Positions 14,583 through 61,935 of a DNA stretch of 64,000 bases are shown in pieces; the first letter of the stretch is position 1; the number at the start of each line of letters is the position of its first letter. The stretch spans positions 43,428 through 107,427 of the forward strand of contig NIVC01002884.1 of NCBI GenBank assembly GCA_002269645.1. Reading direction: 5' to 3'. The DNA is from Macrostomum lignano. Its lineage: Eukaryota. The position numbers were made by a program, and so were the translations under genes. The notes under the pieces were generated by a model. That model was given only the letters and a program-made list of their open reading frames with translations, searched no databases and was not told where the DNA came from.

Positions 14583-14974
14583 ATATTAAGATTGGAATAG
14601 AGGGGGTGAAGTGAAAGTAAAGATATTTTTTTAATTTCAAAGGGGAGAAAAAGAAAAAGGAGAGAAAAGAAGGCAATGAAAAGAGGAAAGGGAAGAAGGG
14701 ATAAAGAGAGGATGTTTGCCCTTGGCCTTGCCTGCATAGTCCCTGCAGCTTGATTGAGTAGCAGCAATTTATGTAGTGGCTTAGGGTAGCAGGCCTTTGA
14801 TCAGATGACATGGCTAGCCATAGCCAGTTGAAGTTGTTGCCTGTGCAACAGATTAGAAGGCCACATCAGGCATGCCCTTGTTAGAGTGCTGCATTGGTCT
14901 TGCTGTTTAGACTGATGCATACTCCAAATGCTGCATGTAGCATGGCTGGCATTGGCCATATATATGTAGAGACT

Positions 14975-15665: not shown

Positions 15666-16830
15666 GCTTTCAACTTAGGGGGAATGCCTATTATCTTTGT
15701 GAAGGCTTTATTTTGTTGTGTACTTTTTTACTTTTAGACAAAAGAGATTCATAGCAAATATCTTTGTCCATGGCATTTTTACTCAAATAAGGTTATCTAT
15801 AAACTGAAGAAGGAATCAGTTCTCAAGAAAATGTGCTTCTTTAATGATTTGCATGAATAATTTTTGCTCCTTACTTATTTGGCAACCTGAAGGGGGACAC
15901 TAGATTGCTAGTAATATTATAAAATTAGTGCAATAATATAACTACAATAAAATTTTTTACAATGATCATCATTCTTAGATTTTTCATGAAATGTTTTTAC
16001 AATTAAAAAATAGCTATAAAAGTTAATTGACATAAATACAGTTTTGTTTTTTAATTCAAATTTGCTCAGTTAACAGTTAACAAGAAACAACAATAGAGTC
16101 TAGGGAGCTGGAAACAAATCTAAGGAACTGTGACCATGGATGTGGAGCCATTTTAGTGGGTAATAATGCGCTCATTGCTTAATAGATAGTACTTGACCAG
16201 CCACTTCATTTCTGTCAGCAAGTCAGCAGCCAGTATAAACAGATCTGTGTCAGGTTAAGTTCTATCAACTCCATAGATTGGCATACATCTCCAAGTGTGA
16301 TGATGCTCATAGGTGCAGGCAGATGTCCCACTGTCACAAGTTGTCAATTCTGAAATTTAGTGAGAATTAGCTCTGTGTCTATTGCCCAGTCTGCCTTGTC
16401 TGCATCTCTCCTGTTCTCCCCTCCCCATCAGCTTTTGTCATAGACAACTTGCCATTAAGAATTTAAATTTAATGAATAAAACTGTATTTATGCCCATTAT
16501 CTTTAATGAGGCTAATGATTTCTTTATTAGCTGATCTTTGATATTTTTACTACCTATATTAGCCTTATAGTAAGTTTTTTTCCCAATAGGTATCAAGTGG
16601 TTCAAGCCCAATAAATTAACTACATTGGTATGGTATTGACCTAGTAATATTTTATATTCTTTATTCCAAGTTTTAACTGATCTATTTTTAGTTATATAGC
16701 ATATTCATATAATATTCACTTTGCAGACATTTTAGAACTTAATATATTGATTAAGAATTTATAGCAAAGAAGCTATGTGGTAGCTCTATTAGCTACCCAA
16801 AGCTTACCAATTCTACAAACTTTTGTTGGC

Positions 16831-16920
16831 ATGGATGCAAATGATGAGCAGCTAGCAAGATTGAAAGAGATTATTCGTCATAATGAAGAGGAGCTAAAGC
16901 AGAAGGAGCAACAATATGAG
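16831..16920 (+). CDS. Giant golgin-like gene, exon 1 (MDANDEQLARLKEIIRHNEEELKQKEQQYE)
   Basis: ATG at 16831, coiled-coil-like peptide, donor GAG|GTATGT, phase 0 matching the next exon. Confidence 0.7.
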
Positions 16921-19900
16921 GTATGTAGTTTGTGCTATTGATTTGATTTGATTTGTATTGATTTGTATTATTAAATTTATTAGTAACTTTTGGATATATT
17001 CATTGTCTTGCCTATATATTATATATTCTTGACTTCTTACATTTAACTTCCATATTGAGTTTATGATACTACTTTATTTGTTGTCTCTCTGTCTACTCTC
17101 TATCTAGTTTGTTTTTTTGCTACCTTTATTGTCAAGTATGCTCTATGCTTATTTGCTTATTTGTCATCAATTTATGTTTAGAAGTTTACCTATTATTTGA
17201 TCAGTGTTGTGTTAATTTGCTGTAAATATAAGCTGTCTAGTGTTTTCAGTTAATTACCTATCACCTGTCCAAGTGTTTCCATTAGCATCTTGTTGTGAGT
17301 GAGAGGTTTGCCATAAATCCTAAACACTCAGGCCACGGTTGTACACATCTACCAGTCTTTAAGTTGTTCTTTAAGTTTGAATTTAATAACAACTTCTGGG
17401 TCAGTGGGGGGCACATAAGGAAAAAAAAACTGCCCTCTGGAGAGGCGTTTTATCACACATTGCTTGTCTGTTTAGTGTCTTTTAGCTGACCTGTCATTTG
17501 TCACATCATGTTGGTAGCTTCCCGTCGATGAGTTTCCAGTATCTGAAATGACTTTCCTGATATGTGTCCTCTGTTTTTATCAACCTTAACCTGCCAACCA
17601 TGAAATTCAATAATTGAGTCAGTAATTATGTACTCATTTGGCTCTGTAACTCAGGAACAGATCTCAGCCCTTCACGCTGCCAGCGTTTTCAAAGACGACC
17701 GCCTGTCCCAATTAGACAGTCAAATTCGTCAGCTAGAAGGCCAGGCTCACGAACTGCGGGAAAGCGTTGCTGAACAATTGCAAGTTGTTGAATCTCGCGA
17801 CGCCGCTATTAAATTGCTGCGCGAACAGCAGGCTGCCGCGTTGCAAGCCAAAGATGAGCAGTTTGCCGAGAAGCTGGCCGCTACACAACTCTATTTTGAG
17901 GAGTGCTTGGCCGAGAAAGAGGACGAGAAGTCGCGTCTAATGGATGCTATTAAGGTGCGGAAGTTATTTCCGTTCAAAGCCAGCAGAATTTTATGATCGT
18001 TCATAAGTAGTGTATTGAGTTTCATATCTTTAGTCCCAATATATTATTTTCTAAGCTGTCTTTTTGGTTTCGAATCTTCTTTTAGTCTTACTTGAGGTAC
18101 CAAACGTGATTTTCGATGGAGGTCGGTTTTCGCTGCAGAATGCATTAGCGAGACAGGAATTTTGTACCTGTCTCCCCTCAGTGTATTCTTTTAAGGATTT
18201 TCCAGCGCAGCTTTTTCTCTACTGACCCGCTAAAAATTCAGGTGCTTCTTCGTTTGCTTCTTGTCGGAATCGGCGCCGCTTCCAGAAACCGAAGGAGCAG
18301 CACAAAAAACTTCAGGGAAACTTTAGGTGGGTGGGCTTTGTCTGCTTCCTGCGCTGATTCCGCAATCAAAGGAACATCAATAGCTTCTTCAGTTGCTTCT
18401 TTTACACTGTCGAGATAGGGCTCCTCTCGGCTGGAGTTGCGTCACAGAAGCGAACGAAGAAACAGCCGAATTTTTTAGCGGGGAATTGTCTATGGCCAAA
18501 CCCCATTCAGCGCTATGCAAAGAGCTAATCTTTGCAAAGCCAGCTTAGGAAACAGCACTGTATTGTAAGCGTTGCCGGTCTCCAGTAACACGAGGTGTGG
18601 CCGAAAATTAACGATAATTTTGCCATGATCTGGTATTGAGCAAAACATGAATTATAATTTTTAACACGGCACCCCAATCGCTGATGCCAGCTCCCGATGC
18701 ATTCTTGGAAGCTCTCCGTCGAGATGCCTCGTAAGACTCATCATCTCGACTGTCGCATTGTTCTTTATGTCTTCCAGTTCTTCAAATCGTGATTCTTTGA
18801 GAGGTTGCTTTACCTTTGGAAAGAGCCAGAAATCGCACGGGGCCGTATCTGGCAAATAAGGTAGTTTGTGCGACTTATATTTCAGCCAAAAACTGTTACA
18901 GTGAAAGTGCTTTGTGCGCCGATGGGTTTTCGTGATGCAGCAACCAGGCATTGTTTCTCCTACTGTTCACGTCGAACCCACTGCATCCTCAGTATCAACC
19001 TCTCTCGAGAACTGCCCCTGTGGCACAAACTCGTGATGGATGCACGAGGCCATGCAAATAAAATTTTTAGTTACTTTTTCAGTCAAAATTCTGGATGAAC
19101 TGTGAGCGCATCCCAAACGAAACCCATGCTTGCTTTATGCTAAGTTCGAAAATCAGCCTCCAGTGAAAATTGCACGATTCGTGAGTGCAGCGTTATTCTG
19201 CTTCATTTTGCCATGATACTTCATGATAGTTCTTCAGGGGTTGTAGCTTATCGGTTACAGCGTCTGGCTAACGACCGTAAGGTCGGGGGTTCGATTCTCG
19301 ACCCACTCGGAACAATTTGTGTCCTTGAGCAAGACACTTAACTCTGCATTGCTTCAGTTCACCCAGCCGTAAAATGGGTGCCAGCATTAGCTGGGGTAAT
19401 TGAGGCTGTGTGTGGCGACCCCCCAGTCCTTGGACTGAACAGCCGTACGCAGCCTTCAGATGCGCCGCGCAATAGCTGCAGCTGAGCTGTCGAATCGAAT
19501 TTGAGGGAAATTTTACTCGTCATTTATTTTCCTGACAGAATTTTGGCTGAGTAGAAGGCATGAGGGGGCTTCTGGGACAAAATTTTTCACGTCCTCCATA
19601 ATCCACCTAAATCCATCCATATTATCCCTGACAGAATCAGAAAAAAAAGGGGGTCGCACTTGCTCCAAAAACTTCGAACGTAATCCCATTAAATCCATCC
19701 ATATTATCCCTGACAGAATCAGAAAAAAAGGGGGTCGCACTTGCTCCAAAAACTTCGAACGTAATCCCATTAAATCCATCCATATTATCCCTGACAGAAT
19801 CAGAAAAAAAGGGGGGTCGCACTCGCTCACAAAACATCCTCCATAATCCACCTAAATCCATCCATATTATCCCTGACAGAATCAGAAAAAAAGGGGGGTC

Positions 19901-49900: not shown

Positions 49901-52900
49901 AGGAAGAGCAGAGGATGCATTCGGAAATCGGATCATATCTGGAAAGAATATCCGAACTAGAATCGCAGGTCAGTGAAGAACAAATTAGCAGAGTGAATCA
50001 ATTGCAAACTGCTAATACACAACTCACAGACGAGCTAAGCAAGCTAAAGGAAGAAAGGATGCATCTGAACCAAACTGTTGCTGATCTGGAATCAGAAAAG
50101 CTTAAACAACAGCAGGAAATAGAAGTGCGAGATGCGCAACTAATCCAACTCGAAGGTAATGCTGCGCATTATAAGGATGACCTCACAAAAGTATCGGACG
50201 AATTGGTCGAAGCGATGGCGTCAAAAGAGGAACTCGTAAAGGAAATCAGTACAATCGTACTCGCTAAGCAAGATTTTGAAACTCAGGTCTCTAAGCTGAC
50301 ACAGGAAAACTCAAATTTAGATGAGCAGAATAAAAAGCTTATTGTGGAACTGGAGCAGTCAGCAGAAGGATTTCGTTCTGCAAAGCAGGAGTTTGAGCGG
50401 TCAGTAAATGCATTAAAGTACGAATTAGAAACTCTGGAGAAATCAAACAGTTATCTGGATGGCCAGCTCCGGCAGTCCTCTGACAAGGCGTCAAATTTGG
50501 AATCCGAACTGCTATTGTTAGACAAGACCTATCAGGTACAAGAATTATAATTTTGTATTTTTTCATACAGTTAATAAAAGCTTAAATTATCACTTGCCTA
50601 TCGTATAAAAAATTAAAAACAACAGAAAAATTTAGACTACGTACAGTACTCTCTCTTATTCATCGTTTTGCATTAAGTTAAATTACTGTCACTTGTCGTA
50701 ACATAAGAATTTTTCTCTTCTTTTTAGGATGCGAAAGTGGACCTATGTGTACAGCTCCAAAGAGCAAAAGAGGAACTACAGCAAACGCAAATAGAAAATG
50801 TGGACCTTCAAACCCGAGAAAGTGCTTCACTTGACAGTGTCAGCACTCTAACTAAAGAGCGTGACGACCTAGCCACTGAGTGCAATCTCGTAGCCTCAGA
50901 AGCTGCCCAGTTAAAAGAAGCCAACTCAGACTTAAATAACAGGCTTGAGGAGGTCTGCGCCGAGCGAGATCGCATGAAAGAAAAGTGCGCTCGACTTGTG
51001 AAGCAGTGCCGCATTTTGAAGGAAGCGTCCAAGCAGAGCCAACAACGAGCAGAGACTGCGGACATTTGCTGTCAGACTGACGAAACCACTGAGTCAGAGG
51101 CTGCAGCTGGTACAGCATCTGCATCAGTATCAGATGCTGCAACTGAAACAGATGTAGTCATCTCTTCTGAGTCTTCATTTGAACCAGGAAGGTTGATGGT
51201 AGATGCTTGTACTGATGCAGAGCCATGTGAACTTGAAAGTCGAGTGTCTGAGCAAGATGTTGAGCAGTTATTATCGTCGAAGATGTCACTGACTGAGGAA
51301 GTATTCAAGTTGAAGCAGCAGCTCGCAGCTTTGGAGTCATCGAAGCAAGCTGCGGATTCAGAGCTTGACAAAGCGATGACTGTCATGTCAGCTCACGAAA
51401 AGCTCGTTTCAGAACACGAAGTGTTAATATCGGAGCGGGATTCATTGATGTCGGAACGCGACGCATTGGTCACGGAGCGCGAAGCCATTCTCTTCGATCG
51501 TGAAAATTTTTCATCAGAGCGGGATGCCTTGATAACAGAAAAGGAAGCTTTGGTGCTAGAGCGGAACACCTTGATAAGAGAACGGGAGACTTTGATATCA
51601 GAACGTGACTCCATGGCTACAGAGCGCGAGGCACTAGCCTCAGAGAACGCTCAGCTGATGGAATTCGCCACCCAGTTGAAGGAGAAGCATGACTCTGTCT
51701 GCACCGAGCGAGATCGCATGAAAGAAAAGTGCGCTCGACTCGTGAAACAGTGCCGCATTTTGAAGGAAGCATCCAAGCAGAGTCACCAGCAAACAGAAAC
51801 TGCGGACATGTGCTGCCAGACTGAAGCCGCCACCGAGTCAGTGGCTGCAGCTGGTACATCATCTGCATCAGTATCAGACGCCGCAACTGAAACAGTTATG
51901 ATAATCTCTTCAGAGTCGTCATTTGAACCAGAAAGGATGATGGTAGATGCTTGTACTGATGCAGAGCCATGTGAACTTGAAAGTCGAGTGTCAGAGCAAG
52001 AGGTTGAGCATTTATTATTGTCCAAGATGTCTCTGACTGAGGAAGTCTTCGATTTAAAGCAGCAGCTTGCAGCTTTGGAGACATCAAAGCAAACTGCGGA
52101 TTCAGAGCTTGAGAGAGCAATTAGTCTAATGTCCGAGCGGGACAGTTTAGCATCACAGTGCGATTCTGTAATATTGGAGCGCGACGCACTAATTTCCGGA
52201 CGTGAACGCCTGATCGCTGATCTTGAAAGCCTAGTATCCTCTCGTGATGCTCTGGTATTAGAGCGTGACTCTCTGGTAACAGAACGCGATACTCTAGTAT
52301 CAGGACGTGCTTCCCTGGTAACAGAACTTGACTCTGTAACAACAGAGCGCGAAACACTAGCCTCAGAAAACGCCCAAATAATGGAATCCGCCGCCCAGTT
52401 AAGGGAAAAGCATGACTCAGTGTGCACAGAGCGAGATCGGATGAAAGAAAAGTGCGCTCGACTCGTTAAACAGTGTCGCAATCTGAAGGAGGCTTCAAAG
52501 CAGAGTCAGCATCGAGCAGAGACCGCAGAATTCAGCTCTCAGACTGAACCGGACACCGTGTCTTTGGCTGCCGCGGGCGCTGTACTGACATCTGATGGTG
52601 GACCAATGCCTTCAGTGACTCAAGTAAATGTATCCACAGAAACCGATCTACTGTTGCAGCCAGAAAGACCGTTGGTAGATGTTGCCGCTGATGACGAATG
52701 GACTGGTGCTCTTACTAAAAGTTCAAAGCGCGAGTTAGAGAGCTTGTTAGCATCAAAGATTTCCCTAGGAGAGGAGGTATCTGACTTGAAGAATCAACTC
52801 ACCGAATCCGAGGCTGCTAGAAAGCTTGCAGAGTCTCAGCTGAAGAAATCATTGCAAAAACTACAAATAGTTGAGAATCTAGCGCAGCATGTGTCAAGTG

Positions 52901-55900
52901 GAGAGACACAGATTGAAGAGTTTCCGGAGTTGGAGACTGTGGTCAGCTCAGTTCGTGTCGCCCTACTTGTAAGTACTTCTTCCAAGTTTTGTACTCGTAT
53001 ATATTTTTAGCGATATTTCGGTTTTTATTTTATTGTTTTCTTCTCAATTTTTTAGAACACTCATTCCTCTAGGAGTCTTCAACAGTCAGAAATAGAACAG
53101 CTGCAATCAACGTTAAAAGGCTTGGAAAATATCCGGGACTCATTAACCAGCGAGCGCGACGCCTTGGCATCAGAACTACAAGCAATGGCGTCGCAACTTG
53201 AAGACATCGCAACTGAACGTGATTCGCTGAAGATGGATCGCAGCCTATTATCTTCTGAACGGGACACCTTGGCGTCAGAAAAAGTTCAGCTGATGGAATC
53301 TACCTCTCAAATAAAGGAGCAGCATGACGCGGTCTGCGCCGAGCGAGATCGCATGAAAGAAAAGTGCGCTCGACTCGTGAAACAGTGCCGCATTTTGAAG
53401 GAAGCATCCAAGCAGAGTCAACAACGCGCGGAGACTGCGGACATGTGCTGTCAGACTGAGACGACCACCGAATCAGTGGCTGCAGCTGGTACAGCATCTG
53501 CATCAGTATCAGATGCTAAAAATAAAACGAATATGATTATCTCTTCTGAGTCGTCATTCGAACCAGAAAGGATGATGGTAGACGCGTGTACTGATGCAGA
53601 GCCAAGTGGACTTGAAAGCCGAGTATCCGAGCAAGAGGTCGAACAGTTATTATCATCCAAGATGTCACTCACTGAGGAAGTATTCAAGTTGAAGCAGCAG
53701 CTCGCAGCTTTGGAGTCATCGAAGCAAGCTGCGGATTCAGAGCTTGACAAAGCGATGACTGTCATGTCAGCTCACGATAAGCTTGTTTCAGAACACGAAG
53801 TGTTACTATCGCAGCGTGATTCGTTGGTGTCGGAACGTGATGCATTGGTCACTGAGCGCGAAGCCATGCTCTCGGATTATGGAAATTTATCATCAGAGCG
53901 GGACGCCTTGATTAAAGAACGGGAGACTTTGGTATCAGAACGGAACGACTTTGCGTCAGAGCGTGACTCCATGGCTACAGAGCGCGAGGCATTAGCCTCA
54001 GAGAACGCTCAGCTGATGGAATCCGCCACCCAGTTGAAGGAGAAGCATGACTCAGTGTGCACCGAGCGAGATCGCATGAAAGAAAAGTGCGCTCGACTCG
54101 TGAAACAGTGCCGCATTTTGAAGGAAGCATCCAAGCAGAGTCAACAACGCGCGGAGACTGCAGACATTTGCTGTCAGACTGAGACGACCACCGAATCAGT
54201 GGCTGCAGCTGGTACAGCATCAGCATCAGTATCAGATGCTAAAAATAAAACGAATATGATTATCTCTTCTGAGTCGTCATTCGAACCAGAAAGGATGATG
54301 GTAGACGCGTGTACTGATGCAGAGCCAAGTGGACTTGAAGGTCGAGTGTCCGAGCAAGAGATTGAGCAGTTATTATCATCCAAGGTGTCACTGACTGAGG
54401 AAGTCTTCGAGTTGAAACAGCAGCTCGCAGCTTTGGAGTCATCGAAGCAAGCTGTGGATTCAGAGCTCGACAAAGCAATGACTGTCATGTCAGCTCATGA
54501 AAATCTCGTTTCAGACCGAGACAATTTACTGTCTGAACGGGAGAAGCTTGTCTCAATGTACAATAGTTTACTGTTAGAGCGTGACACGTTGATTAAAGAG
54601 CGCTCAGCTACGATCTCTGAGCTTGAAAACCTAGTATTAGAACGAAACGCTCTGGTTTCGGAACGTGACACGCTTGCGTTAGAGCGGAATACTTTAGCTT
54701 CAGAGAACGCTGCTCTGATGGAATCTGCCACCCAGTTGAAGGAAAAGCATGACGCAGTCTGTACTGAGCAAGATCGCATGAAAGAAAAGTGCGCTCGACT
54801 TGTGAAGCAGTGCCGCATTTTGAAGGAAGCATCCAAGCAGAGTCATCAGCGAGCAGAGACTGCGGACATTGGCTGTCAGATTGAAACAGCCACTGAGTCA
54901 GTAACTGCAGCTAGTGCGACAGCTACATCAGATGCTGCAACTGAAACAGATGTCATCTCTTCCGACTCTTTATTCGAACCAGTAAGGGTGATGGTTGATG
55001 CTAGTACTGATGTGGAATTCAATGAAGTTCACAGTCGAGTGTCCGAACAAGAAGTTGAGCAGTTATTGTTCTCTAAGATGGCACTGACTGAAGAAGTATT
55101 CGAGTTAAAACAACAACTCGCAGCTTCAGAAGCATCCAGAGAAGCGACAGATTCTGAACTTGCTAAAGTAAAGGTTCTAAACTCAGATCGAGAGGATTCA
55201 GTTTTAGATCGAGACACTTTGGTATTAGAGCGAGATTCGTTGTTAACCCAACGGGACAGCATACTTTTAGAGCGAGACACTTTGATTGCAGAGCGAGAGT
55301 CAATGCTTTCCGATCGGGAAAATTTAGTCGCAGAGCGGGACGCTTTAGCCTCTGAGAACGCTGCTCTAATGGAATCTTCTACCCAGTTGAAAGTGACGCA
55401 TGAGGAAGTCAGCACCGAGCGAGATCGCATGAAAGAAAAATTTGCCCGGCTTGTAAAACAGTGCCGAATTCTGAAAGAGGCAGCCAGGCAGAGTCAGCAG
55501 CGAGCAGAGACTGCGGAATGCAGCTGTCAGACCGAACCAGAAAGGGAGTCAGCGACTCTATCTGACGCAAACACCGCTTCAAATGCTAGGCCGGACGTTT
55601 CAGTTGCCGATGCATCAACAGAAACGGTTGCACTTTTACCTCCCGAGGCTTCATTCGAAAAAGAGAACCCGACAATTTCTGAGTCTCAGACCGTTGAAGT
55701 TTTCTATCGCGCTTTTGACGATGCTATTAGAGCTGCTGGACTTTCATACCGCGAAGTGAGTCTCCCATCTCCGCCCTCGTTGTTGTCAATGTCCGAGCTT
55801 TCAGAATGGATTACTAACCTTGTTAGCGTAAGTTTCAATGAGTTTTCATTTTTTGTACTGAAATTTCTTCACTTAATACTGCAATTTTATGAAATTTTTG

Positions 55901-58900
55901 TCATTATTCTAATACAGTGCGTGGCCAGTCAGCATCAACAGTTGGTAAATACTGGCGAGCGCTGCGAAGGCTTGGAGCAGACTATCGCCGAGAAAGAGGA
56001 GTCCCTAACTGAGATGATGGAGCGCCTTGAGATAGCCAACAAGCGAGCGATTACCACAGGCTCCGCCAGTTGGATTTCCAGCCGTCCTGCCACCTCGGTT
56101 GCCAGCCGTCAAGTTGAATGCGACCTTACTCAGCCGCTTATTGATGAGCTGGAGGCGACGCTGGCTAAACGCGACGGCAAAATTGCCGCTATGGAGCGGG
56201 ACAGTCGCGAACTCAACCGGAAGCTGGAGTCCCATCTGCAAACTATGCGTCGAATGGAAGCTCGACTCCAGGCTTCGAGTCGAATGCTGCGCACTAGGCT
56301 GGTTGATAGCGCCGAGGCTGAGCAACTGGCGGTTGAGGTTGGTGCAGTGCTTTTGTAGGGGTTTGTAAAAACGGTGCTCACCTAACACTAGAAAAATTTC
56401 GGAAAGCTTGGAAAAACTGCTATAGCAGCATTCCAACGAAGCTCTCTACGTTCGTACATTGTAAAAGAGGATGTCAACTTTTGCGGCGAAGTAAAGCTCT
56501 GGACCCAACCAACTACATTTTTTATAACTTTTCGGATCAATTAACAACTTGTAAAGAAACGCCAAGGCATCTCATCTGGTTCGCTCCTTTGTGCTCCCAG
56601 GGTTTGTTGGTCCAGAGCTTTACTTTCGACTCCATTCGGGTGCTCAAGTTGACATCAACTATCTGTTTATTGACGTTTGTAATTGATACGTCGTAGAAAC
56701 GTCACAAATCTATTAATTGGGGGATTTAGCTTAGTGGTTAGAGCGTCGGACTCACGACTTAAAGGTCGGGGGTTCGATTCCCGATCTCACTGGAACAATT
56801 TGTGCTCTTGAGCAAGACGCTTAACTCTGCATTGCTTCAGTTCACCCAGCTGTAAAATGGGTGCCAGCATTAGCTGGGGTAATTGAGGCTGTGTGGCGAC
56901 CCCCCCCCCCCAGTCCTTGGGCTGAACAGCCGTACGCAGCCTTCAGATGCGCCGCACAATAGCTGCGGCTGAGCTGTCGGTTGTATATCTTCCCAATCGG
57001 GGTAGGTGTAATCAGTTATTATTATTATTATTATTATTATCATCATCATTATTATCATTATCATCATCGTCATGATTATCATTATCATTAATAAATGATA
57101 GAACCGCTTACTGCTTACTGTTTTACGATATGAAAGATCCAGTTTGTTAAATTTCTAATTAATGAAGTTAAGCAGTGCTTTTACATTCTGAAAGTTCTAG
57201 TTTCTGAAGCGATCTCACCCCAATGCCATCCAGCTGTCTTTAGCTCTTTCTTAACCTTATTATACACAATAAATCATATTGAAAAGGCCTCTTCAATCAA
57301 TTCCAGGTGGAGTCTTTGTTCGCGCAGCTCGACGCAGCCGAAGAAGAGGTTGGCCAGCTGCGCTTGACCCTGCGGGACCGGGACAATGAGCTGCTCCGGC
57401 TAGCCGACCAGCTGCGCGTCGAATCCGAGGCCAAGCGGCTCGACCTGTCAACTATGCGCGAGCAGTCCCGTCTGTACGAGGCGGAGGTGCGTCGCCTACG
57501 TTTTGAATTGGACGCCAAAGAGGAAATGCTGACGCTGACTCGCGAGGCCGCCACCACCGCCACCCCCGCAGCCGCCGCGTCCACTTCGTCGGGTTGCGGC
57601 AGAGAGGACACGGCGGGGGATGGGGAGCTGGACAATAGTGCCGCATTTTATAAGCGCCGTACGGACGAACTCACTGTTGAACTCAACAATGCTAGAAATT
57701 CTATTCAGCGGCTGACTGGCGAGTTAAAGGAAAATTCTATTGCGGCTGAAGCTGCCGTTGAAAAACTGCGCGCCGAGCTGTCGGTCACCGTTGAAAGCAA
57801 AGAGTTACTAAACAGAGAATTAATTGAAGCCAAAACTGCTTGCGACAGTTTGACTATTGAAATAGCCGAAGCCAAAGAAGATGGAAGCATTATAGAAAAG
57901 CTTAACTCAGAATTGGCAACGGCCTCAGATGACAAAGAGTTGTTGAACAAAGAGCTGTTTGAAGCTAAAGCTACAATTGACAATCTGACGGCTGAATTAG
58001 CTAAAACAAAGACTGAAATCGAGCTTGTGGGTGATTCTAATTCAAAACTGACCAATGCCATCAGAGACAAAGAGTTACTAAGCGAAGAATTGAGTAAAGC
58101 TAAAGCTACAATTGACAATTTGACCGCTGAATTGGCTAAAACAAAGACTGAACTCGAGCTTGTGGGTGATTCTAATTCAAAACTGACCAATGCCATCAGA
58201 GACAAAGAGTTACTAAGCGAAGAATTGAGTAAAGCTAAAGCTACAAATGACAATTTGACTGCTGAATTGGCTAAAACAAAGACTGAACTCGAGCTTGTGG
58301 GTGATTCTAATTCAAAACTGACCAATGCCATCAGAGACAAAGAGTTACTAAGCGAAGAATTGAGTAAAGCTAAAGCTACAATTGACAATTTGACTGCTGA
58401 ATTGGCTAAAACAAAGACCAAAGTGGACGGCGATGCTAGTGAAGCGCTGGGCAATTTAAACTCTGAATTGACGGTCGCTTTAGAAGAAAAAGAAAAAGAA
58501 CTAAGCGAGACAAAAGTTCTAATAGACAATTTGACGGCCGAATTGACCAAAGCCAAAGAAGACATGGTTATTGAATCTACAGAAACTAGAAGCATCATTG
58601 AACAACTTGCAAAGGACAAGGAAAATTTAAATCAACAACTAACTGCGGCTAACAATGGAATTGACAGTTTAAACATCGAATTTGTCAGGACTAAGGAGGA
58701 TTTGAATAATAGACTGGCTGAAGCTGAATGCACGATCGATAATCTGCGCTCTGAGCTGGCCAGTGCGGCTACCGCTAATGATAATTTATGCAACGAATTG
58801 GCAGAAGCTAAAATATTAATCGATGAGCTGAGAAATGAGCAAAAAGAAGTTGAAAAACCTACTTTGGCTACTGTAAGTTGCGCCAGCCAGACTGAAGCGG

Positions 58901-60603
58901 TCCCGGAAGCTGCAGGTCTCGAACAGCAGCGACTGTATGGCGCTGGTCAGGACACCGCCGATGGTGAAAGCGAAGCCAGTCTGCGCAGTCGTTTGGCTGA
59001 GAAAGAGCGCCTGGAGCAGCGCTACGCCGCTCTGGTAAAGAAGCTCCGACAGCAGCGACAGGAGACACTGCAGCAGCACCGTAATCAGCTGGCTGAAGTT
59101 CAGTCAGCAGCCGCTGCTGAGGTGGACGAGCTGCGTCGACGATTGGAAGCCAGCGAAGCTGAGCTCGATTCGGCACGGATGTCCCTGGCTTTAGCACCGC
59201 CACCGCCGCCACCTCCGCCGCCTCCGCCTCAGCAGCAGGCAGCCGAATCGGAGCTGCAGTCTCTGCGTGCTGTGCACTCGCGATGCCAAGGACAGCTGGA
59301 CCAGGTTCGAGCCGAGCGCAATCGAATTCAACAGGAGTTCGACAGGCTGCGGCGGCGGCTAGAAGAGAGGCCTTTGTCGTCAACTCCGCCACCACCGCCT
59401 TCGCAGCCGATCGAGCGCTTACAGCAGTCTTCATCTCCGACGCCGTCACCGCCGCCCCTGCATGCTCCAACAGCTGAAGCATCGGCGGTTGATGCCGCTG
59501 CGGCTGCAGCAGCCGAGGATGAAGTTCTAACACTGCGCTCCGAGAACGAAGGCTTGCGCTTTAAAGTGAGCGTGCTAGAGACCAAAGCCAAGAAGATGGA
59601 GTTCCGACTTAGGGCTGAACGCGACAAGATTGACAAGCTGCAGCTGCGGCTCGACGAGAAAGACGTGGAACTGGACCAGCTGGTTGACAAGCTTCGCGCC
59701 AGCCGGGGCCAGCTCGAATCTGAGCGCAGTCGACACCTCAACGAAGCCAAACGGCTCAGCGCAGCGCTTGAGGCTGAAGAGGCTCGGGCCGGCAAGCTCG
59801 AGCGTCGACTACGCGACGGCAGCTCCGAGTCGGCGACGGCCGCCCTCGCCGAGGAGGCGGCTGCGGCTCGCGAAGCAAAACGCCAATCGGAGCAGCGCCT
59901 GCTAGCGGAGGCGGCCGATCTGCGCGGCCAGCTGGACGAACTGGCGGCTGACAATCGCGATTTGCGCAGCCGACTTGAAGCGGCCGCCCCGTCTGGCTCT
60001 GGCGCCTCCGCCGGGGTCAGCGCGAGCGACTGTGCCGAGTGTAGGCGTCTGCGCGAGGCTGTCCGAGTGCTGGAGCTTCAACAGGCCTCGAGACGTAGCA
60101 GGCAGCCAACTTGCGAGACCAAGTCTGTTGGCACCGAGGCGGTGTCAGTTGATGAGGCTGCCTGTCAGACATTGGAACCTGACGAAGAGAATGATGCAAT
60201 GCAGCGGCGATTAAACGAGCTAGAGTTGGCGGCTGTGGAGTGCGAGTCGCTTCGGGCTCTGGTGAAGCAGATGGAGGAGTCTGCGGCGCCTTGTGCTCCA
60301 ACGCCGACACCGCAGCCGCTGCGACCGTCGCCGTCGCCGCCACCTCCAGACTCGGAGGACACTTTGTCGGCGTCTCAATCAGCTTTGGACGAGTCATCAG
60401 TGCTGATTCCAATGCTGATGGACGAGCAGCAGGCCCTCGCGGGCTTACAATCGACAACAACACCAACGATGGCGTTGGTTCGACGACTTCGTCGATGCCT
60501 TCAACCGTGGCGATCGTTGAGGCTTCGGCCGAGCGCGCGCAACGCCGTCATCGCATATTTGTTTGGCCTGCACTGCCTGTTGCTGTACTGGTTGCTGCTC
60601 TGA
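16831..60603 (+). CDS. Giant tail-anchored coiled-coil golgin (giantin/GOLGB1-like), 11 exons, about 7,543 aa predicted
   Basis: Exons 16831-16920, 17655-17954, 36015-36102, 36187-36368, 36913-37077, 37168-37455, 37747-50535, 50728-52968, 53056-55827, 55918-56337, 57307-60603. All are GT-AG and phase-compatible; total 22,632 nt. E/K/Q/L-rich heptads throughout. C-terminal hydrophobic segment RNAVIAYLFGLHCLLLYWLLL has the Y-x4-H motif of giantin, golgin-84 and CASP anchors. Further upstream exons cannot be excluded. Confidence 0.8.
17655..17954 (+). CDS. Giant golgin-like gene, exon 2
   Basis: Acceptor CTCAG|GAA, donor AAG|GTGCGG, 300 nt, coiled-coil translation (within ORF 17628-17996). Confidence 0.82.
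18225..18485. mobile_element. Probable MITE with about 40-bp imperfect TIRs
   Basis: CCCGCTAAAAATTCAGGTGCTTCTTCGTTTGCTTC versus the reverse complement of GAAGCGAACGAAGAAACAGCCGAATTTTTTAGCGGG. Confidence 0.45.
18589..19549 (-). mobile_element. Decayed mariner (Tc1/mariner) element, interrupted by a SINE and by the Polinton; its last bases lie at 35874-35881
   Basis: Transposase remnants (LPYLPDTAPCDFWLFPKVK, like mariner HPPYSPDLAPxDF; WLLHHENPSAH in another frame) at about 18660-19150. TIR-like ends ACGAGGTGTGGCCGAAAATT (18590) and, after removing the Polinton, TACGAGGTCAGCCAAAATT on the minus strand. Confidence 0.7.
19237..19495 (+). mobile_element. tRNA-derived CORE-type SINE, copy 1
   Basis: A-box TAGCTTATCGG, B-box GGTTCGATTCT, then TGTGTCCTTGAGCAAGACACTTAAC...CAGCCGTAAAATGGG resembling the MIR/CORE domain. 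A second similar copy is at 56719. Confidence 0.85.
19550..20181 (+). repeat. Left TIR of the Polinton, with internal about 81-bp tandem units
   Basis: Reverse complement of 35237-35867. Outer about 400 bp nearly identical (only A/T-run lengths differ); inner about 230 bp visibly diverged. Confidence 0.96.
20246..20485 (+). CDS. Small Polinton ORF (79 aa), unknown function
   Basis: ATG in the element's typical AAAAATG context. Converges on the penton gene with a 4-bp gap. Tyr/Trp-rich. No family recognised. Confidence 0.55.
   Translation: MFPVVSPGSYYTQPNPLYKSKYQCKLECSEYMRKYWPNVDINVPNINLALQRHWFHKYGVTYVKDYDSYYNFAEIIRQL
20490..21353 (-). CDS. Minor capsid protein (penton, single jelly-roll), about 287 aa
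   Basis: Polinton penton-like motifs AIRLDP..NYHVYL..F..WSNVPN...NNKFYY and C-terminal NILYNI...AGG..VVEKP...I.EIVLQF....G..VDFNGE..VLTL.I. Immediately downstream of MCP on the same strand. Recognised from memory. Confidence 0.8.
   Translation of the reverse strand: MEAIAERLNNIVSHSKESIPITITGRINDSNGIFVEKLEQAIRLDPGANYHVYLNDFTGWSNVPNVMAANNKFYYKWKGAAADPVVFHVSTQSVDTYNNFLENVFTKRGHFETPDASKPEKKLFPVKLTYDLTVMRVVMQVHKNAEVEFKDDTWYRELGFEKKVYKAESAAQTATQASGTVRMVRESVSGLFLAPNIADIVKGLNILIRSNLSLDWVFKGKRTNILYNISNSVAGGQMVVEKPNPVKRVVLSNKEIHEIVLQFETEDGMGVDFNGEEFVLTLIIERM
21375..22661 (-). CDS. Major capsid protein (double jelly-roll, hexon-like), 428 aa
   Basis: Size, beta-rich pattern and Polinton MCP-like motifs (D.TIK..Q..P...N..NL, VFVPL.F.SGF, LYP.LP...DF..N....FY, YPMFG.DVS.RQ). 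Intact ORF. Confidence 0.85.
   Translation of the reverse strand: MNDPLTPVFYKINKPILSDDSTIKATQVRVPSHENQNETNLGPGQTLTFTYNGCSSLVSVHSLKSGFHMTFQFKTKGGADAARANVDKHDADVALISNFWAYMFKEFSVSNGSTELERIANFGIVYDAHCLIENPDFIQLGSGAGFIADEKEGDINDSGYKNRKKRYNYALQGADDAAKNPQYRSVDVFVPLRFMSGFCNTFNRLTSNFSYTFRMTRDDRSRVLWTGADHTRMEVKLTGIELYLEVIEPKTALKADYLKAIEKDIDVAYTAYMCRDERNETRTNICIKEGSCSNPRYIIINMRNPNSIIRYMHGDVRSIQHEISDNLYPALPQNGDFSQNKISKFYSELVDLAVKENNGIAITALQYGTLYPMFGADVSARQMLTDNSPVNIVTNIERTTATPVDLYIIYAFERKVKLNMINNSSSKV
22692..23918 (+). CDS. Polinton accessory/structural protein with poly-Q/P tract, 408 aa
   Basis: Intact ORF divergent from MCP. C-terminal RLAVLLGAAKTG...EFVNILDKMLE..YI resembles a helical motif I recall from metazoan Polinton accessory (PZ-like) proteins; unverified. 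Confidence 0.75.
   Translation: MKRKSSYHISELEKLAQAEKRVTGLINKEQQSYNEFVQAATEFHKPGYTEAKKNIDTVKETIDDIQESQLQNTLGKIPSSPGQPQAQQPGQPVQMKVTDNFFGPVTDDGKYIFGISAWRKNITGEPADYNIEVTKETISINKGAETKRNPFTQSLLDYMTKNQEKISEKQLKNYRDLVTFALERDIDILKNNGVLKVLHENRIDLNRFRKYKYFKQWFGLPDQEEVIRQQPQQPQPQQQQPQQQQPKQQLQQPQQQQPQTQPQPQQPPPPQQQITPEQVLEALEKAGPNEISQYKDTNPDTWRQLERLSPERMKRINDRVFTPQQRQAPHDSSSSDQSFESPPSSSGKGMPEFYKRLAVLLGAAKTGMKDENRKEFVNILDKMLERKYIDKRARELLLSRFNKKKISI
23923..24303 (+). CDS. Putative virion core / membrane-lytic precursor, 126 aa
   Basis: ATG in AAAAAGATG context. GxG motifs (RGSG, SGNG, KGSG) flank an amphipathic helix LADLIAQGAKIFKVIG. Confidence 0.7.
   Translation: MPIIFEKDVDKYYDKEELNLIKRGSGLFPAGHYPRKERSGNGLADLIAQGAKIFKVIGENKENIKNVAEAAGSVATAAKKIKDTVTPKQEIQPPLAPLAPNPDSVDPAVYEKMRASIKKGSGFKFD
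24350..24470 (+). repeat. 21-bp tandem repeat (AAAATGACACATCTAAGTCCC), about 6 copies
   Basis: Directly visible. In frame with the ATPase ORF, giving MTHLSPK repeats. Confidence 0.95.
24514..25314 (+). CDS. Genome packaging ATPase (A32/FtsK-HerA family), 266 aa from the likely start MDFSND
   Basis: Walker A GSSGSGKT, Walker B HLIVFDD, A32 signature FTRGRHNNCNVIYIAQ.WF.LP.KTIR.N. Confidence 0.96.
   Translation: MDFSNDFNPHWTRNQIKFSHHESIPSHFRCIVVGSSGSGKTFRVFNMLLRPGFIDYDTLHIYSPTLYQDEYRMLIAGLQNKLNKEDIIQCFNNQQILPSNPEIVAAEYAKHLKDNEKWQNIKVFTYGDPQADPKTKLLPQPDELEKGRKHLIVFDDCMTGPQKQIENYFTRGRHNNCNVIYIAQNWFELPNKTIRGNCNLILLFPTIPQDRLKRFYNEVIAPAYFINPTKNSSRKISQEEFVNLCYDKWNQPYQFVIISKEKRTVI
25331..26134 (+). 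CDS. Coiled-coil Polinton protein (possible fibre/spike), 267 aa
   Basis: Long heptad region with a 21-aa internal duplication (KV.NLEEFM.QST.LHDRIKE) and C-terminal 10-aa repeats. Function is inferred only. Confidence 0.7.
   Translation: MSINFAGESISGNSALTSAQISILDRRYINSDEKIPEIKLNKNRLKQLERSMHQLQINIEDLRIKVARQKFESDKLYVQVVHATNELRSEITSAVSQINGLTSTINLLRNSTDRRMRILEEGVFTNRAKVNNLEEFMNQSTALHDRIKENVATNTGKVRNLEEFMTQSTSLHDRIKERLDAIKVYLDLIFTEWQKSLRRISRLEGVHNLPDIDTVEEAPQTTREISDPTDLTTDHKFREPTSLTTNPKFREPTGLFEIKCRMERIDK
26248..26931 (+). CDS. Membrane-associated Polinton protein, 227 aa (family resembling the adintovirus so-called GasderminX ORF)
   Basis: FRL.EI...R..LE motif, two Gly/Ala/Ser-rich hydrophobic helices, basic RNRRKK, and IS.AI.D..IS.DEF motif. 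N-terminal PTAPSAP. Family assignment from memory. Confidence 0.75.
   Translation: MDAQNSLYDPNAPTAPSAPQYEQQKLYPVITCNSQQFRLVEIQKMRDDLEKNIFHNTKKIKRYDNHCKFFDYSNMILGSVSVLSGSAAAVSVLPVITDPIAIPLGSVGAACGLISAITGALARNRRKKLKQLQEKQVKEKGVHTSIIGYISRAIEDKFISEDEFKTIQDLYEQSIRMNLNMVGTDDMSQLRNELRKFFNIMRKEGQREVQRGMHNEPYETQVRIISL
26898..27297 (-). CDS. Adenain-like cysteine maturation protease, about 133 aa, with two frameshifts
   Basis: FRGIFMRDTLP / ECGIMNFD...PGSHWV / YYFDSYG / QGLSSDICGELC (catalytic His, Asp, Gln, Cys) recovered after adding one base at about 27195 and one at about 27005. Confidence 0.9.
27330..31175 (-). CDS. polB: Protein-primed family B DNA polymerase (pPolB), about 1,283 aa, with six frameshifts
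   Basis: GSGW...SYIELP...INVKN.DN.C N-terminal block, exonuclease YADFEC and HNAKNYD, DHCHFTGKFRGAAH, RGG, YLDANNLYGWAM, KLANNSVYGK, YTDTDS, KSKGI. Five ORFs join into one after single-base additions at about 30766, 30687, 29480, 28686, 28588 and 27587. Confidence 0.96.
31300..31743 (-). pseudogene. Adenovirus pX-like core protein precursor with disrupted 5' end (missing from the ORF track)
   Basis: Manual translation gives ...EKSGG-ILPLAALIPIIAGAVSAAGGVAGGVATAVK..., compared with human adenovirus pX RGG-ILPLLIPLIAAAIGAVPGIASVAL. ATG at 31743 in TAAAAAATG context is followed by two in-frame TAA (codons 10 and 13). Confidence 0.75.
31760..32797 (-). CDS. int: Retroviral-type DDE integrase (Polinton INT), 345 aa
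   Basis: HQADLLFLP (D), KTDPGKEF (D), FVERFN.TL (E). Intact ORF. No C-terminal chromodomain recognised. Confidence 0.96.
   Translation of the reverse strand: MTDQKLKKLYYSDKGFFVGKNAVSKLMELSKEPKATVEKWLSKQAVFQVYFPPVKFERPHFSIYKPNEAHQADLLFLPNDSGYKYALTITDVASRYKEARPLKTKKSEAVATALQDIYKNSPLTYPQIFKTDPGKEFMGAVKSLMEKKNTAIRYGRTELHRDQAFVERFNLTLAKRLFTKQTAEELKLKSGQYYTKWTERLPTVIEQLNNEVTRMTGLKPSHAIKQDTVELKSSHKTDNNTTTPHNTHNTKHTSNYPKLPGVESPYILTNSEFLRFLYLPGELEKDTKRRATDPYFSLDVHKIDRHFTSDSGDYYFLSQAFNPKSPTRSFTRAELLVIPADTEIN
32828..33316 (+). CDS. Parvovirus-type phospholipase A2 domain protein, 162 aa
   Basis: LPGYKYCGP.N Ca-binding loop and P.NELD.VC.WHD..Y catalytic HD motif, typical of the parvoviral VP1u PLA2 fold. 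ATG at 32828 divergent from integrase. Confidence 0.92.
   Translation: MQRSGGKIDSHGLIEKLPHPNKGWTLPGYKYCGPLNPLEIQLDKNNNPHPGHEPVNELDSVCMWHDIKYRDFPEEKNRWDKEMLKRLDNIGVSSGFRESIARKLVKAVIFSKTKLGLGVYAEGGCLGREGGCTGCSGTGFILCAPNEELGRLLKDMGIERDA
33355..34060. repeat. AT-rich non-coding block with a direct duplication of about 290 bp and repeated TCCTGGATCTCCAGGA / TTCCAGGATTTT motifs
   Basis: 33355-33620 is repeated at about 33652-33880. The hairpin-forming TCCTGGA-TC-TCCAGGA occurs four times (about 33532, 33824, 33895, 33978). Confidence 0.9.
34093..34971 (-). CDS. Spliced two-exon Polinton gene, 246 aa, unknown function (possible HTH)
   Basis: Exon 1 34971-34682, intron 34681-34544 (CG|GTAAG...TTTTTTTTAG|T), exon 2 34543-34093. 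Phase-2 junction joins ORFs 34678-35079 and 34093-34563 in frame (KTR-FYNAK). Confidence 0.8.
35047..35054 (-). promoter_or_regulatory. TATA box for the spliced Polinton gene
   Basis: TATATAAA on the minus strand about 80 nt upstream of ATG 34971, embedded in GC-rich sequence. Confidence 0.6.
35068..35112. other. Perfect 45-nt palindrome with internally palindromic arms
   Basis: TGTAGTTGCCAACTACAAGGTA-G-TACCTTGTAGTTGGCAACTACA: 22-bp stem and 1-nt centre. Partial repeats at about 35105-35128 and 35206-35236. Confidence 0.92.
35237..35867 (-). repeat. Right TIR of the Polinton
   Basis: Reverse complement of 19550-20181, with the same order of internal repeat units. Confidence 0.96.
36015..37455 (+). 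CDS. Giant golgin-like gene, exons 3-6 (36015-36102, 36187-36368, 36913-37077, 37168-37455)
   Basis: Four short exons with canonical splice sites and phases 0/1, 1/0, 0/0, 0/0. Exons 5 and 6 share an ELQAE.K.HL..KA.VKSLEKQL repeat. Confidence 0.82.
36398..36862. repeat. Minisatellite, 32-bp unit (GCAGGTAGATGCAGGGCTTCACTGAAGAGTGA), about 14 copies
   Basis: Tandem copies in intron 4 of the giant gene, starting about 30 nt after the donor. Confidence 0.96.
37747..50535 (+). CDS. Giant golgin-like gene, exon 7 (12,789 nt, 4,263 codons)
   Basis: Uninterrupted ORF 37741-50550. Acceptor TTGCAG|GAC and donor CAG|GTACAA. Confidence 0.93.
38560..42350 (+). repeat. Two coding arrays of 105-bp (35-aa) repeats
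   Basis: ELKQQIDGLQSEKSQYADQVADLTEKLSVSEANFS, about 11 copies (38560-39870), degenerate copies to about 41050, then EMKLQLDSLQSEKSQLVDQVRELDEKLQASESNSS, about 12 copies (41070-42350). Confidence 0.96.
45175..48380 (+). repeat. Coding arrays of 84-bp (28-aa) repeats
   Basis: EELESKSKQVTELEASVNEQTEKNRALV, about 25 copies (45175-47250) and about 7 copies (47805-48380). The preceding block (about 44830-45200) is duplicated at about 47460-47830. Confidence 0.96.
50728..52968 (+). CDS. Giant golgin-like gene, exon 8
   Basis: Acceptor TTTTTAG|GAT, donor CTT|GTAAGT, in frame with ORF 50737-53010. Confidence 0.9.
50950..55540 (+). repeat. Seven about 220-250-aa coding modules anchored on ERDRMKEKCARLVKQCRILKEA
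   Basis: The anchor motif recurs at about 50977, 51721, 52444, 53355, 54078, 54781 and 55433. Confidence 0.93.
53056..56337 (+). CDS. Giant golgin-like gene, exons 9-10 (53056-55827, 55918-56337)
   Basis: Acceptor TTTTTAG|AAC. A 90-nt in-frame intron (AGC|GTAAGT...ATACAG|TGC). Final donor GAG|GTTGGT. Confidence 0.87.
56719..56980 (+). mobile_element. tRNA-derived CORE-type SINE, copy 2
   Basis: A-box TAGCTTAGTGG, B-box GGTTCGATTCC, CORE-like body closely similar to 19237-19495. Followed by an (ATT)n/(ATC)n tract at 57017-57090. Confidence 0.88.
57307..60603 (+). CDS. Giant golgin-like gene, last exon (coiled coil, Pro-rich hinges, tail anchor)
   Basis: Acceptor TTCCAG|GTG. ORF of 1,098 aa ending in the transmembrane segment with no luminal tail. 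Confidence 0.9.
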   Translation: MESLFAQLDAAEEEVGQLRLTLRDRDNELLRLADQLRVESEAKRLDLSTMREQSRLYEAEVRRLRFELDAKEEMLTLTREAATTATPAAAASTSSGCGREDTAGDGELDNSAAFYKRRTDELTVELNNARNSIQRLTGELKENSIAAEAAVEKLRAELSVTVESKELLNRELIEAKTACDSLTIEIAEAKEDGSIIEKLNSELATASDDKELLNKELFEAKATIDNLTAELAKTKTEIELVGDSNSKLTNAIRDKELLSEELSKAKATIDNLTAELAKTKTELELVGDSNSKLTNAIRDKELLSEELSKAKATNDNLTAELAKTKTELELVGDSNSKLTNAIRDKELLSEELSKAKATIDNLTAELAKTKTKVDGDASEALGNLNSELTVALEEKEKELSETKVLIDNLTAELTKAKEDMVIESTETRSIIEQLAKDKENLNQQLTAANNGIDSLNIEFVRTKEDLNNRLAEAECTIDNLRSELASAATANDNLCNELAEAKILIDELRNEQKEVEKPTLATVSCASQTEAVPEAAGLEQQRLYGAGQDTADGESEASLRSRLAEKERLEQRYAALVKKLRQQRQETLQQHRNQLAEVQSAAAAEVDELRRRLEASEAELDSARMSLALAPPPPPPPPPPPQQQAAESELQSLRAVHSRCQGQLDQVRAERNRIQQEFDRLRRRLEERPLSSTPPPPPSQPIERLQQSSSPTPSPPPLHAPTAEASAVDAAAAAAAEDEVLTLRSENEGLRFKVSVLETKAKKMEFRLRAERDKIDKLQLRLDEKDVELDQLVDKLRASRGQLESERSRHLNEAKRLSAALEAEEARAGKLERRLRDGSSESATAALAEEAAAAREAKRQSEQRLLAEAADLRGQLDELAADNRDLRSRLEAAAPSGSGASAGVSASDCAECRRLREAVRVLELQQASRRSRQPTCETKSVGTEAVSVDEAACQTLEPDEENDAMQRRLNELELAAVECESLRALVKQMEESAAPCAPTPTPQPLRPSPSPPPPDSEDTLSASQSALDESSVLIPMLMDEQQALAGLQSTTTPTMALVRRLRRCLQPWRSLRLRPSARNAVIAYLFGLHCLLLYWLLL
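57930..58420 (+). repeat. Coding 135-bp (45-aa) repeats, 3-4 copies
   Basis: GACAAAGAGTTACTA recurs at 58066, 58201 and 58336 (DKELLSEELSKAKATIDNLTAELAKTKTELELVGDSNSKLTNAIR). Confidence 0.93.
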
Positions 60604-61639: not shown

Positions 61640-61935
61640 CCCTCTGGCGGTCAGGTAGGGTCTTGGACTGCAGGACTGCCACTGTTTGGTTTGAACTTGA
61701 AAGGAGGCTTTTGGGTGCTGCCGCAAATCAAGGCGACAGCCATCCTTCAGCCCTACGCGCACTACGCACACGAGGATGCCGATACTTGCTTTCTTATCGT
61801 CAAGCATGCATAATGCTGTGAACTGAGAGTTGTCACACATGGTTCAAGCGGATTCGAACCCCAATCTAATGTAGCCAAAGACTTTGAATCGAACTCAAAG
61901 GCTTTGGTCGCTACTCAGCCCATGCACCACGGTTA
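61640..61935 (-). mobile_element. Probable second-family tRNA-derived SINE
   Basis: Minus-strand B-box GGTTCGAATCC (about 61852-61862) and a tRNA-like 5' region. Body unrelated to the CORE SINE. Family not identified. Confidence 0.5.

Follow-up and report, generated by a model that had tools for sequence, protein, structure and literature searches.

Giantin is a Golgi-rim golgin of vertebrates whose partners include p115, Rab1/Rab6 and GCP60, and to our knowledge only three tail-anchored golgin families (giantin, golgin-84 and CASP) possess an unusual membrane anchor built around a tyrosine and a histidine. Lava lamp, a Drosophila golgin of ~2,800 aa, was once proposed as a homologue of giantin. 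The anchors of the three tail-anchored golgins are similar to one another and have in common the Tyr and, at the same position in each, the His (PMC5840792, PMC6633398), the Tyr being functionally important (PMC5840792), and giantin, golgin-84 and CASP all bind TRC40 (PMC6633398). Giantin itself has been reported as chordate-specific, in a survey whose main text makes no mention of platyhelminths (PMC5840792). Given that silence, a spiralian protein that combines a golgin-type anchor with a core the size of giantin is a real lead.

Here we describe a candidate of this sort from the flatworm Macrostomum lignano, a species in which both transgenesis and RNAi are available. The locus lies within a 64,000-nt stretch of genomic DNA ('the window', to which all positions refer), and we lean, if only by a little, towards the reading that it encodes a rod-like coiled-coil protein with a tail anchor, of the same kind as the Golgi-rim golgins and closest in design to giantin. 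An earlier note on this DNA had proposed eleven exons and a coding sequence of about 22.6 kb. Our independent rebuild, in which every gap was scanned for frame-keeping GT…AG pairs, returned exactly that span: eleven GT-AG, phase-compatible exons on the forward strand at 16831-60603, with a coding sequence of 22,632 nt including the stop codon and a product of 7,543 aa (Table 1). The largest open frame, which contains exon 7, continues for 4,273 codons without a stop, a length that rules out chance as its source. Nine of the ten introns are in phase 0 and the tenth in phase 1. Introns 3, 5, 8 and 9 measure 84-90 nt and intron 7 measures 192 nt; GC content is 23-25% in introns 7-9 and 32-33% in introns 3 and 5. 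Intron 2 reaches 18,060 nt because it houses a 16.3-kb mobile element of the Polinton type.

Table 1. Features of the M. lignano locus, in window coordinates.
Feature	Position	Strand	Details
Exon 1	16831..16920	+	aa 1-30; putative start ATG at 16831, donor GAG|GTATGT
Alternative in-frame ATG for gene start	17628
Exon 2	17655..17954	+	aa 31-130; best frame-compatible acceptor/donor, coiled-coil composition
Polinton double-jelly-roll capsid	21375-22661	-
Polinton A32-type ATPase	24355-25314	+
Polinton protein-primed polymerase B	27518-30652	-
Polinton rve integrase	31760-32797	-
Exon 3	36015..36102	+	aa 131-159; phase 1 at end; downstream of Polinton-bearing intron 2
Exon 4	36187..36368	+	aa 160-220; donor AGG|GTAAAT
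Exon 5	36913..37077	+	aa 221-275; contains motif RKRHLTAKAKVKSLEKQL
Exon 6	37168..37455	+	aa 276-371; second copy of exon 5 motif, KKKHLSTKARVKSLEKQL
Exon 7	37747..50535	+	12,789 nt, aa 372-4634; proline-free coiled-coil rod
35-aa (105-nt) repeat zone	38557..42335	+	Tandem Repeats Finder
28-aa (84-nt) repeat zone	45180..48380	+	Tandem Repeats Finder
Exon 8	50728..52968	+	aa 4635-5381; open frame begins exactly at TAG| acceptor
~240-aa module, seven copies	50792..55546	+	start-to-start spacing 651-912 nt
Exon 9	53056..55827	+	aa 5382-6305; 3' junction WITNLVS|CVASQ matched by PAA69455.1
Exon 10	55918..56337	+	aa 6306-6445; both junctions matched by PAA69455.1
Exon 11	57307..60603	+	aa 6446-7543 and stop
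45-aa (135-nt) repeat	57962..58418	+	3.4 copies, 97% matches (Tandem Repeats Finder)
Most conserved cytoplasmic block	59533..59727	+	aa 7188-7252, …LETKAKKMEFRLRAERDKIDKLQLRLDEKD…
Basic juxtamembrane segment ALVRRLRRCLQPWRSLRLRPSARN	60472..60543	+	aligns with giantin …WKRVLRSLCHSRTRVP…; helix in AlphaFold2 model
Transmembrane anchor AVIAYLFGLHCLLLYWLLL	60544..60600	+	last 19 residues, stop directly after, no residue beyond

Two of the ten junctions (exon 9/10 and exon 10/11) have external support, from the GenBank protein PAA69455.1; for the other eight we relied on the reading frame and the splice consensus. That protein, 1,591 aa long and labelled 'hypothetical protein, partial', corresponds to part of exon 9 together with exons 10 and 11, and agrees with the model at …WITNLVS|CVASQ…, at …LAVE|VESLF… and at the C-terminus. 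Its coding span omits 270 nt, equal to two 135-nt repeat units. Such a skip is what one would expect of a mapped transcript with fewer copies, and the two junctions therefore probably rest on RNA. A further partial gene call of 578 aa lies inside exon 8. The gene is thus present in GenBank only as fragments, its annotation having been broken up by assembly breaks in the repeats. Positions 48887-64000 match another M. lignano contig, NIVC01001321.1 of assembly GCA_002269645.1, at 99.9% identity over its first 15,120 nt; that contig begins inside exon 7. A second M. lignano contig carries another copy of the gene at 97.6-98.9% identity; we set it aside as evidence on the exon 7/8 junction or on dN/dS, since it starts only at 55654 and most of its differences are single-base indels of the sort that assembly errors produce.

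We infer that exons 1-11 are joined in one mRNA, and regard it as possible, if on the unlikely side, that the locus gives rise to two or more mRNAs, or to an anchorless isoform through polyadenylation in 'intron 7'. If the gene were split, exons 1-7 would encode a cytosolic coiled-coil protein of ~4,640 aa ending …KTYQVQEL at its stop codon, while exons 8-11 would encode a tail-anchored protein of ~2,900 aa from an mRNA trans-spliced at the acceptor 50727/50728, translated from the ATG that the spliced leader itself supplies. Trans-splicing affects 30% of M. lignano genes, and 15% are organised in operons whose spacers are typically ~100 bp; the spliced leader, 35 nt long, has ATG as its last three letters (PMC8629364). 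An mRNA could thus begin even at a phase-0 acceptor that lacks a nearby ATG, and the boundary between two genes could fall in the 192 nt that separate exon 7 from exon 8; for the same reason we dropped the missing in-frame ATG at the start of exon 8 as an argument for a single gene. The gap is 25% GC, an in-frame stop occurs 4 codons past the exon 7 donor, and an AATAAA follows at 50573, 25 nt after that stop. The donor itself (CAG|GTACAA) scores low, the exon 8 acceptor is in phase 0 so that a leader ATG would be in frame, and the GenBank annotation divides the region into separate partial genes. Other points weigh against a split. Introns 8 and 9 are equally AT-rich and just as short, and intron 9 (90 nt) is confirmed as cis-spliced; the exon 7 donor is no weaker than GAG|GTTGGT, the confirmed donor of exon 10; and in a 192-nt stretch with 75% A+T, one AATAAA or ATTAAA would be expected from chance alone. 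Exon 8 has TAG as its acceptor, whereas [T/C]TNCAG is enriched at trans-splice sites (PMC8629364), and the partial GenBank models are explained by a contig that starts inside exon 7 together with fragmentary transcripts. One gene is also more parsimonious than two neighbouring giant coiled-coil genes that share a frame. Further downstream, exons 8 and 9 are tied together by a series of ~240-aa modules that continues across intron 8. Were the split version true, the claim of a 7,500-aa, 1-micrometre protein would fall and the golgin-like reading of the 3' part would stand.

Taken as a single product, the protein is made up of 15% E, 13% L, 12% S, 8% Q and 8% K, with 1.0% Pro and 1.4% Gly, and proline is absent from ~aa 405 to ~4740. 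A crude heptad-register test over the whole 7,543 aa (35-residue windows scoring above the 99th percentile of composition-matched shuffles) placed 82% of residues in heptad-patterned windows, which, together with the 1% Pro, bears out the expectation that almost all of the protein is coiled coil. The residues failing the test belong to seven acidic Ser/Thr-rich linkers of ~65 aa each, to runs of ERDxLxS heptads, with which this scoring copes badly, to a short non-repetitive stretch at ~aa 6208-6291, to two Pro-rich hinges near the membrane (aa ~7134-7174 and ~7440-7470), and to the tail.

Much of the rod consists of internal repeats. The 35-aa zone holds two young arrays (38557-40007, 13.8 copies at 90% matches; 41041-42335, 12.3 copies at 97% matches) with diverged copies between them, and the 28-aa zone holds arrays at 45180-47248 (24.6 copies, 94% matches) and 47791-48380 (7 copies, 95% matches). 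The array periods of 105, 84 and 135 nt are all multiples of three, and the copy number of the 135-nt repeat varies among other M. lignano contigs and transcripts. Each ~240-aa module comprises runs of ERDxLxS heptads, the block ERDRMKEKCARLVKQCRILKEA and an acidic Ser/Thr-rich linker of ~65 aa. Overall, 56% of residues have a counterpart elsewhere in the protein at 50% identity or more, and 41% have one at 80% or more; ~4,500 aa remain once every residue at least 80% identical to sequence elsewhere in the protein is removed, and the unique core amounts to ~3,300 aa, roughly the size of giantin. The extreme length is mostly the result of recent, lineage-specific internal amplification and not of a longer ancestral rod. 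The description of the protein as over twice human giantin accordingly stands as regards the model, which is 2.3 times longer, with the qualification that the excess is mainly young repeats added to this core.

The element in intron 2 is a complete-looking Polinton/Maverick of 16,318 bp (19550-35867). Its terminal inverted repeats include a 267-nt stretch that is 100% complementary, with tandem units of ~82 nt, its target-site duplication is 6 bp (TGGCTG), and the insertion looks recent. The polymerase B coding sequence is divided among three open frames that are out of phase with one another (29423-30652, 28560-29363 and 27518-28582, all on the reverse strand), reflecting either two frameshifts or short introns, a split that is odd given the perfect terminal repeats. 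An exact look-up of the capsid returned no identical record. Another Polinton ORF (32585-33316, forward strand) contains a phospholipase A2-like domain (Pfam Phospholip_A2_4, E 1e-13), which we take to be of the type found in parvovirus capsid proteins. Elsewhere in intron 2, an ORF at 18661-18951 on the reverse strand looks, on visual inspection, like the C-terminus of a Tc1/mariner-type transposase (…PYLPDTAPCDFWLFPKVKQPLKE…) and is probably a decayed element. An interspersed repeat of ~260 nt occurs at 88% identity in intron 2 (19237-19492) and intron 10 (~56719-56978), and is also present in the second M. lignano contig, while intron 4 contains a minisatellite (36397-36863) with 14.6 copies of a 32-nt unit at 94% matches. 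Outside the gene, the divergently transcribed upstream neighbour is a mitochondrial carrier gene, with exons at 4401-4757 and 8190-8600 on the reverse strand (Mito_carr, E 1e-23). About 1.8 kb past the stop codon, a proline-rich open frame on the forward strand (62450-63238), with no Pfam match, falls within a 938-aa M. lignano gene call (contig NIVC01001321.1, 13277-16093). Low-complexity tandem repeats at 3289-3852 and 14900-15750 generate long spurious open frames on both strands.

Repeats and a mobile element on this scale raise the alternative that the length is an artefact of mis-assembled arrays, or that this copy of the gene is dead, for example inactivated by the Polinton. We consider this very improbable. 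Contig NIVC01001321.1 does break inside exon 7, the number of 135-nt repeats does differ between contigs and the annotated transcript, and a 16.3-kb element with perfect terminal repeats does occupy intron 2, where it may affect this gene copy. Against this, the frame stays open through all 22.6 kb including every array, each period is a multiple of 3, and ~4,500 aa are still left after removal of all residues at least 80% identical elsewhere. The window and contig NIVC01001321.1 agree at 99.9% over 15 kb, and the Polinton insertion is intronic.

At the other end of the protein, a Kyte-Doolittle scan over the full length found a sole hydrophobic peak, which reaches 2.15 and is formed by the last 19 residues (the highest unrelated segment elsewhere scores 1.0), and YLFGLH (Tyr-x4-His) lies inside it at aa 7529-7534 (60556-60573). 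An AlphaFold2 model of the last 350 aa comprises long confident helices, a disordered Pro-rich stretch, the basic helix and, at the very end, another helix of pLDDT 84-89. The predicted topology is that of a tail-anchored protein whose bulk lies entirely on the cytoplasmic side, in keeping with the earlier claim of a tail anchor.

For comparison, giantin tails were collected with an approximate sequence of the human giantin C-terminus as query; the matches were named GOLGB1 fragments, as much as 90% identical to it, and diverged ones at 43-52%. These tails read …IYFLMIHVLL…, with the motif variants YFLMIH, YLLALH and YLLLIH, and the GOLGB1 fragments all finish …PLL..(I/M/V)Y(F/L)L..HVLL.LC(F/L)(T/S)GHL. 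When the giantin profile was aligned to the flatworm pair with hhalign, Y fell on Y and H on H (P = 2.7e-4 over 25 columns and 1.3e-3 over 37 columns, the second with a probability of 19%; hhalign probabilities ranged over 19-41%). Shuffles that kept composition reached the observed score in 0/200 trials when the transmembrane columns were shuffled and in 3/200 when 35 columns were. Among Pfam families only CASP_C (PF08172) touched the tail, covering its transmembrane positions 225-245 only, with 11.3-12.7 bits (E 0.22-0.083) against a gathering cut-off of 28 bits; as a control, real giantin tails gave either no match or CASP_C at E 4.9. The profile check of the tail against golgin anchors that had been proposed thus came out in part as expected, with the giantin Tyr and His in register and CASP_C touched, and in part not, since CASP_C stayed below threshold. 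Taken together, the in-register alignment, the beaten shuffles, the contact with CASP_C and the literature uphold the earlier identification of the Y-x4-H segment as an anchor of the giantin/golgin-84/CASP type. These comparisons support placing the anchor in the golgin class; they do not show membership of the giantin, CASP or golgin-84 family.

Relatives of the protein are few. A HMMER scan with the last 600 aa against 1.84 billion representatives found three real ones: an M. lignano fragment, a 350-aa protein encoded on a 1.1-kb contig of run SRR28338165 (P0002), and a 3,468-aa coiled-coil protein from an AT-rich genome (P0003; UniParc UPI00060FFEC7). P0002 is 39% identical to the flatworm model overall and 49% over 168 coiled-coil residues, a stretch that includes an invariant CAEC(R/K)RLREAVRVLE block, and its C-terminus, …RGLAIAYLCAVHLGLLYCLLA (…IAYLCAVH…), keeps the anchor Tyr and His. 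P0003 is collinear with the model in two blocks, aa 6322-6433 and aa 7188-7252, with exon 10 aligning to P0003 residues 2239-2361, and the P0003 protein model has no terminal anchor. The second block is the most conserved part of the cytoplasmic region: it is 45% identical to P0003 (E 4e-10) and is overlapped by the 168-residue stretch of P0002. A metagenome scan with the flatworm alignment found no relative, and no PDB sequence matched at E <= 1. A word-indexed search with the first or last 420 aa gave no match among its best 8,000 candidates; in that index, the identical GenBank fragment belongs to a cluster whose representative, a 295-aa piece, fails to cover the query.

Alternatively, the protein might belong to some other membrane (the ER, the nuclear envelope or an organelle specific to flatworms), with its Tyr/His anchor convergent, as a motif of ~20 residues could be. 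We find this doubtful. It would fit the restriction of the golgin similarity to ~25-37 residues at a low hhalign probability, the lack of any golgin Pfam family above threshold, and a family otherwise unknown, with its three relatives among 1.84 billion representatives. It fits poorly with the conservation of Tyr and His in P0002 at 39% overall identity, and with a Tyr/His arrangement that beats composition-matched shuffles. In Pfam, no KASH, kinectin or other anchor family matched the tail, and the protein ends at the membrane helix without the ~30-aa lumenal peptide of a KASH domain. A single KASH-named entry appeared in the search, on exon 8: KASH_CCD, which models the coiled-coil region of CCDC155 and scored 16.5 bits where 43.3 are required.

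No Pfam family exceeded threshold on any exon translation, which returned only sub-threshold coiled-coil noise, and Golgin_A5 (PF09787) was not matched by the last 68, 150, 420 or 1,098 aa at E cut-offs of 10, 10, 10 and 0.1, respectively. Homology to giantin outside the anchor was likewise not found: hhalign stops after 25-37 columns and nothing upstream aligns. A BLAST comparison of the N-terminal 420 aa with an approximate giantin sequence gave a best match at E 0.01 with 27% gaps, which is not significant. A candidate N-terminal likeness to giantin (LKEIIRHNEEELKQKEQ against LKDIIRQKDVQLQQKDE, and a KAKVKSLEKQL-type motif) was rejected, having E 3.1 or no alignment. The whole model against human giantin, again in approximate form, reached 36.6 bits in BLAST against 28.9 bits for the reversed control; these are weak coiled-coil matches that pair the ERD-rich modules with ERD/DRD-rich segments of giantin.

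The giantin orthology suggested by the earlier note therefore found no support beyond the anchor, where the profile alignment ends and with an N-terminal resemblance that is not significant. That the protein is nevertheless a true orthologue of vertebrate giantin (GOLGB1), its rod diverged beyond recognition and giantin older than the chordates, we hold to be unlikely. Such an origin would account for the Tyr-x4-His in register, the basic juxtamembrane stretch and the near absence of a lumenal tail, and for a unique core of ~3,300 aa set against the ~3,260 aa of giantin; the margin of the whole-model BLAST score over its reversed control, against an approximate giantin sequence, is a lead only. 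In favour of orthology, the chordate-specific survey leaves platyhelminths out of its main text; against it, that survey found no giantin outside chordates (PMC5840792). Besides the alignment ending at the anchor and the insignificant N-terminal matches (E 0.01 with 27% gaps; motif E 3.1), it also tells against orthology that the flatworm tail is nearer to the CASP model than real giantin tails are. A more elaborate form of this idea, to which we give still less credence, would have a pre-chordate giantin lineage of which the flatworm protein is a spiralian orthologue with the Tyr/His anchor kept, the anchorless P0003 type, and perhaps Lava lamp, being derived. As far as sequence can tell, that the protein works like a tail-anchored rim golgin is supported, and that it is giantin is not.

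We return, then, to the tail-anchored, rim-golgin-like protein that we favour. By analogy with characterised golgins, we infer for it Golgi localisation, the route of insertion, a dimeric rod and tethering, along the following lines. The C-terminal anchor would be inserted post-translationally into the ER by the GET/TRC40 route, and the Tyr/His transmembrane helix would then allow the protein to leave the ER and be retained at the rims of Golgi cisternae, behaviour reported for CASP, golgin-84 and giantin. Some 7,500 N-terminal residues would project into the cytoplasm as a parallel coiled-coil rod, for which ~0.148 nm per residue gives an upper-bound length of ~1.1 micrometres, ~0.9 micrometres of it heptad-patterned. 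About seven acidic Ser/Thr-rich linkers and the two membrane-near Pro-rich hinges would break the rod and could make of it a flexible tether or a rim scaffold. The tandem 35-, 28- and 45-residue units and the seven ~240-residue modules were amplified recently on the ~3,300-aa unique core. Functionally, the rod might tether vesicles or bridge cisternal rims, as is thought for giantin.

If the single 7,543-aa product is real, no known golgin would come near it in length: a ~1-micrometre tether arising from recent repeat amplification. The locus also amounts to a natural experiment on tether length, in which a rod has been approximately doubled by very young in-frame repeats. As to origin, giantin-like proteins may be older than thought, with a rod evolving too fast to be recognized, or the anchor may have been recruited onto a different rod.

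Set beside the known systems, the flatworm protein is closest in design to giantin (GOLGB1). Both are tail-anchored with essentially no lumenal tail, both place an Arg-rich stretch before a Tyr-x4-His in the same register (IYFLMIHVLL in giantin, AYLFGLHCLL in the flatworm), and both consist of a coiled-coil rod that exceeds 3,000 aa and has a hinge containing Pro close to the membrane. The flatworm protein's unique core is similar in size to giantin, the full model being longer by virtue of its young tandem arrays. They differ in that no homology is detectable outside the anchor, and in that giantin is reported to be chordate-specific while the host here is a platyhelminth. With CASP, the alternative product of CUX1, the matched segment has in common the conserved Tyr and His, but the ~200 CASP_C residues upstream of the anchor are unmatched and CASP is ~10 times shorter. 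Golgin-84 (GOLGA5) is likewise a tail-anchored rim golgin with the anchor Tyr and His, according to the literature, at ~730 aa. Lava lamp, compared by description alone, is similarly a giant coiled-coil Golgi protein of an invertebrate; it is peripheral and has no transmembrane anchor, unlike the flatworm protein, and in this it resembles the P0003 model, which is also anchorless.
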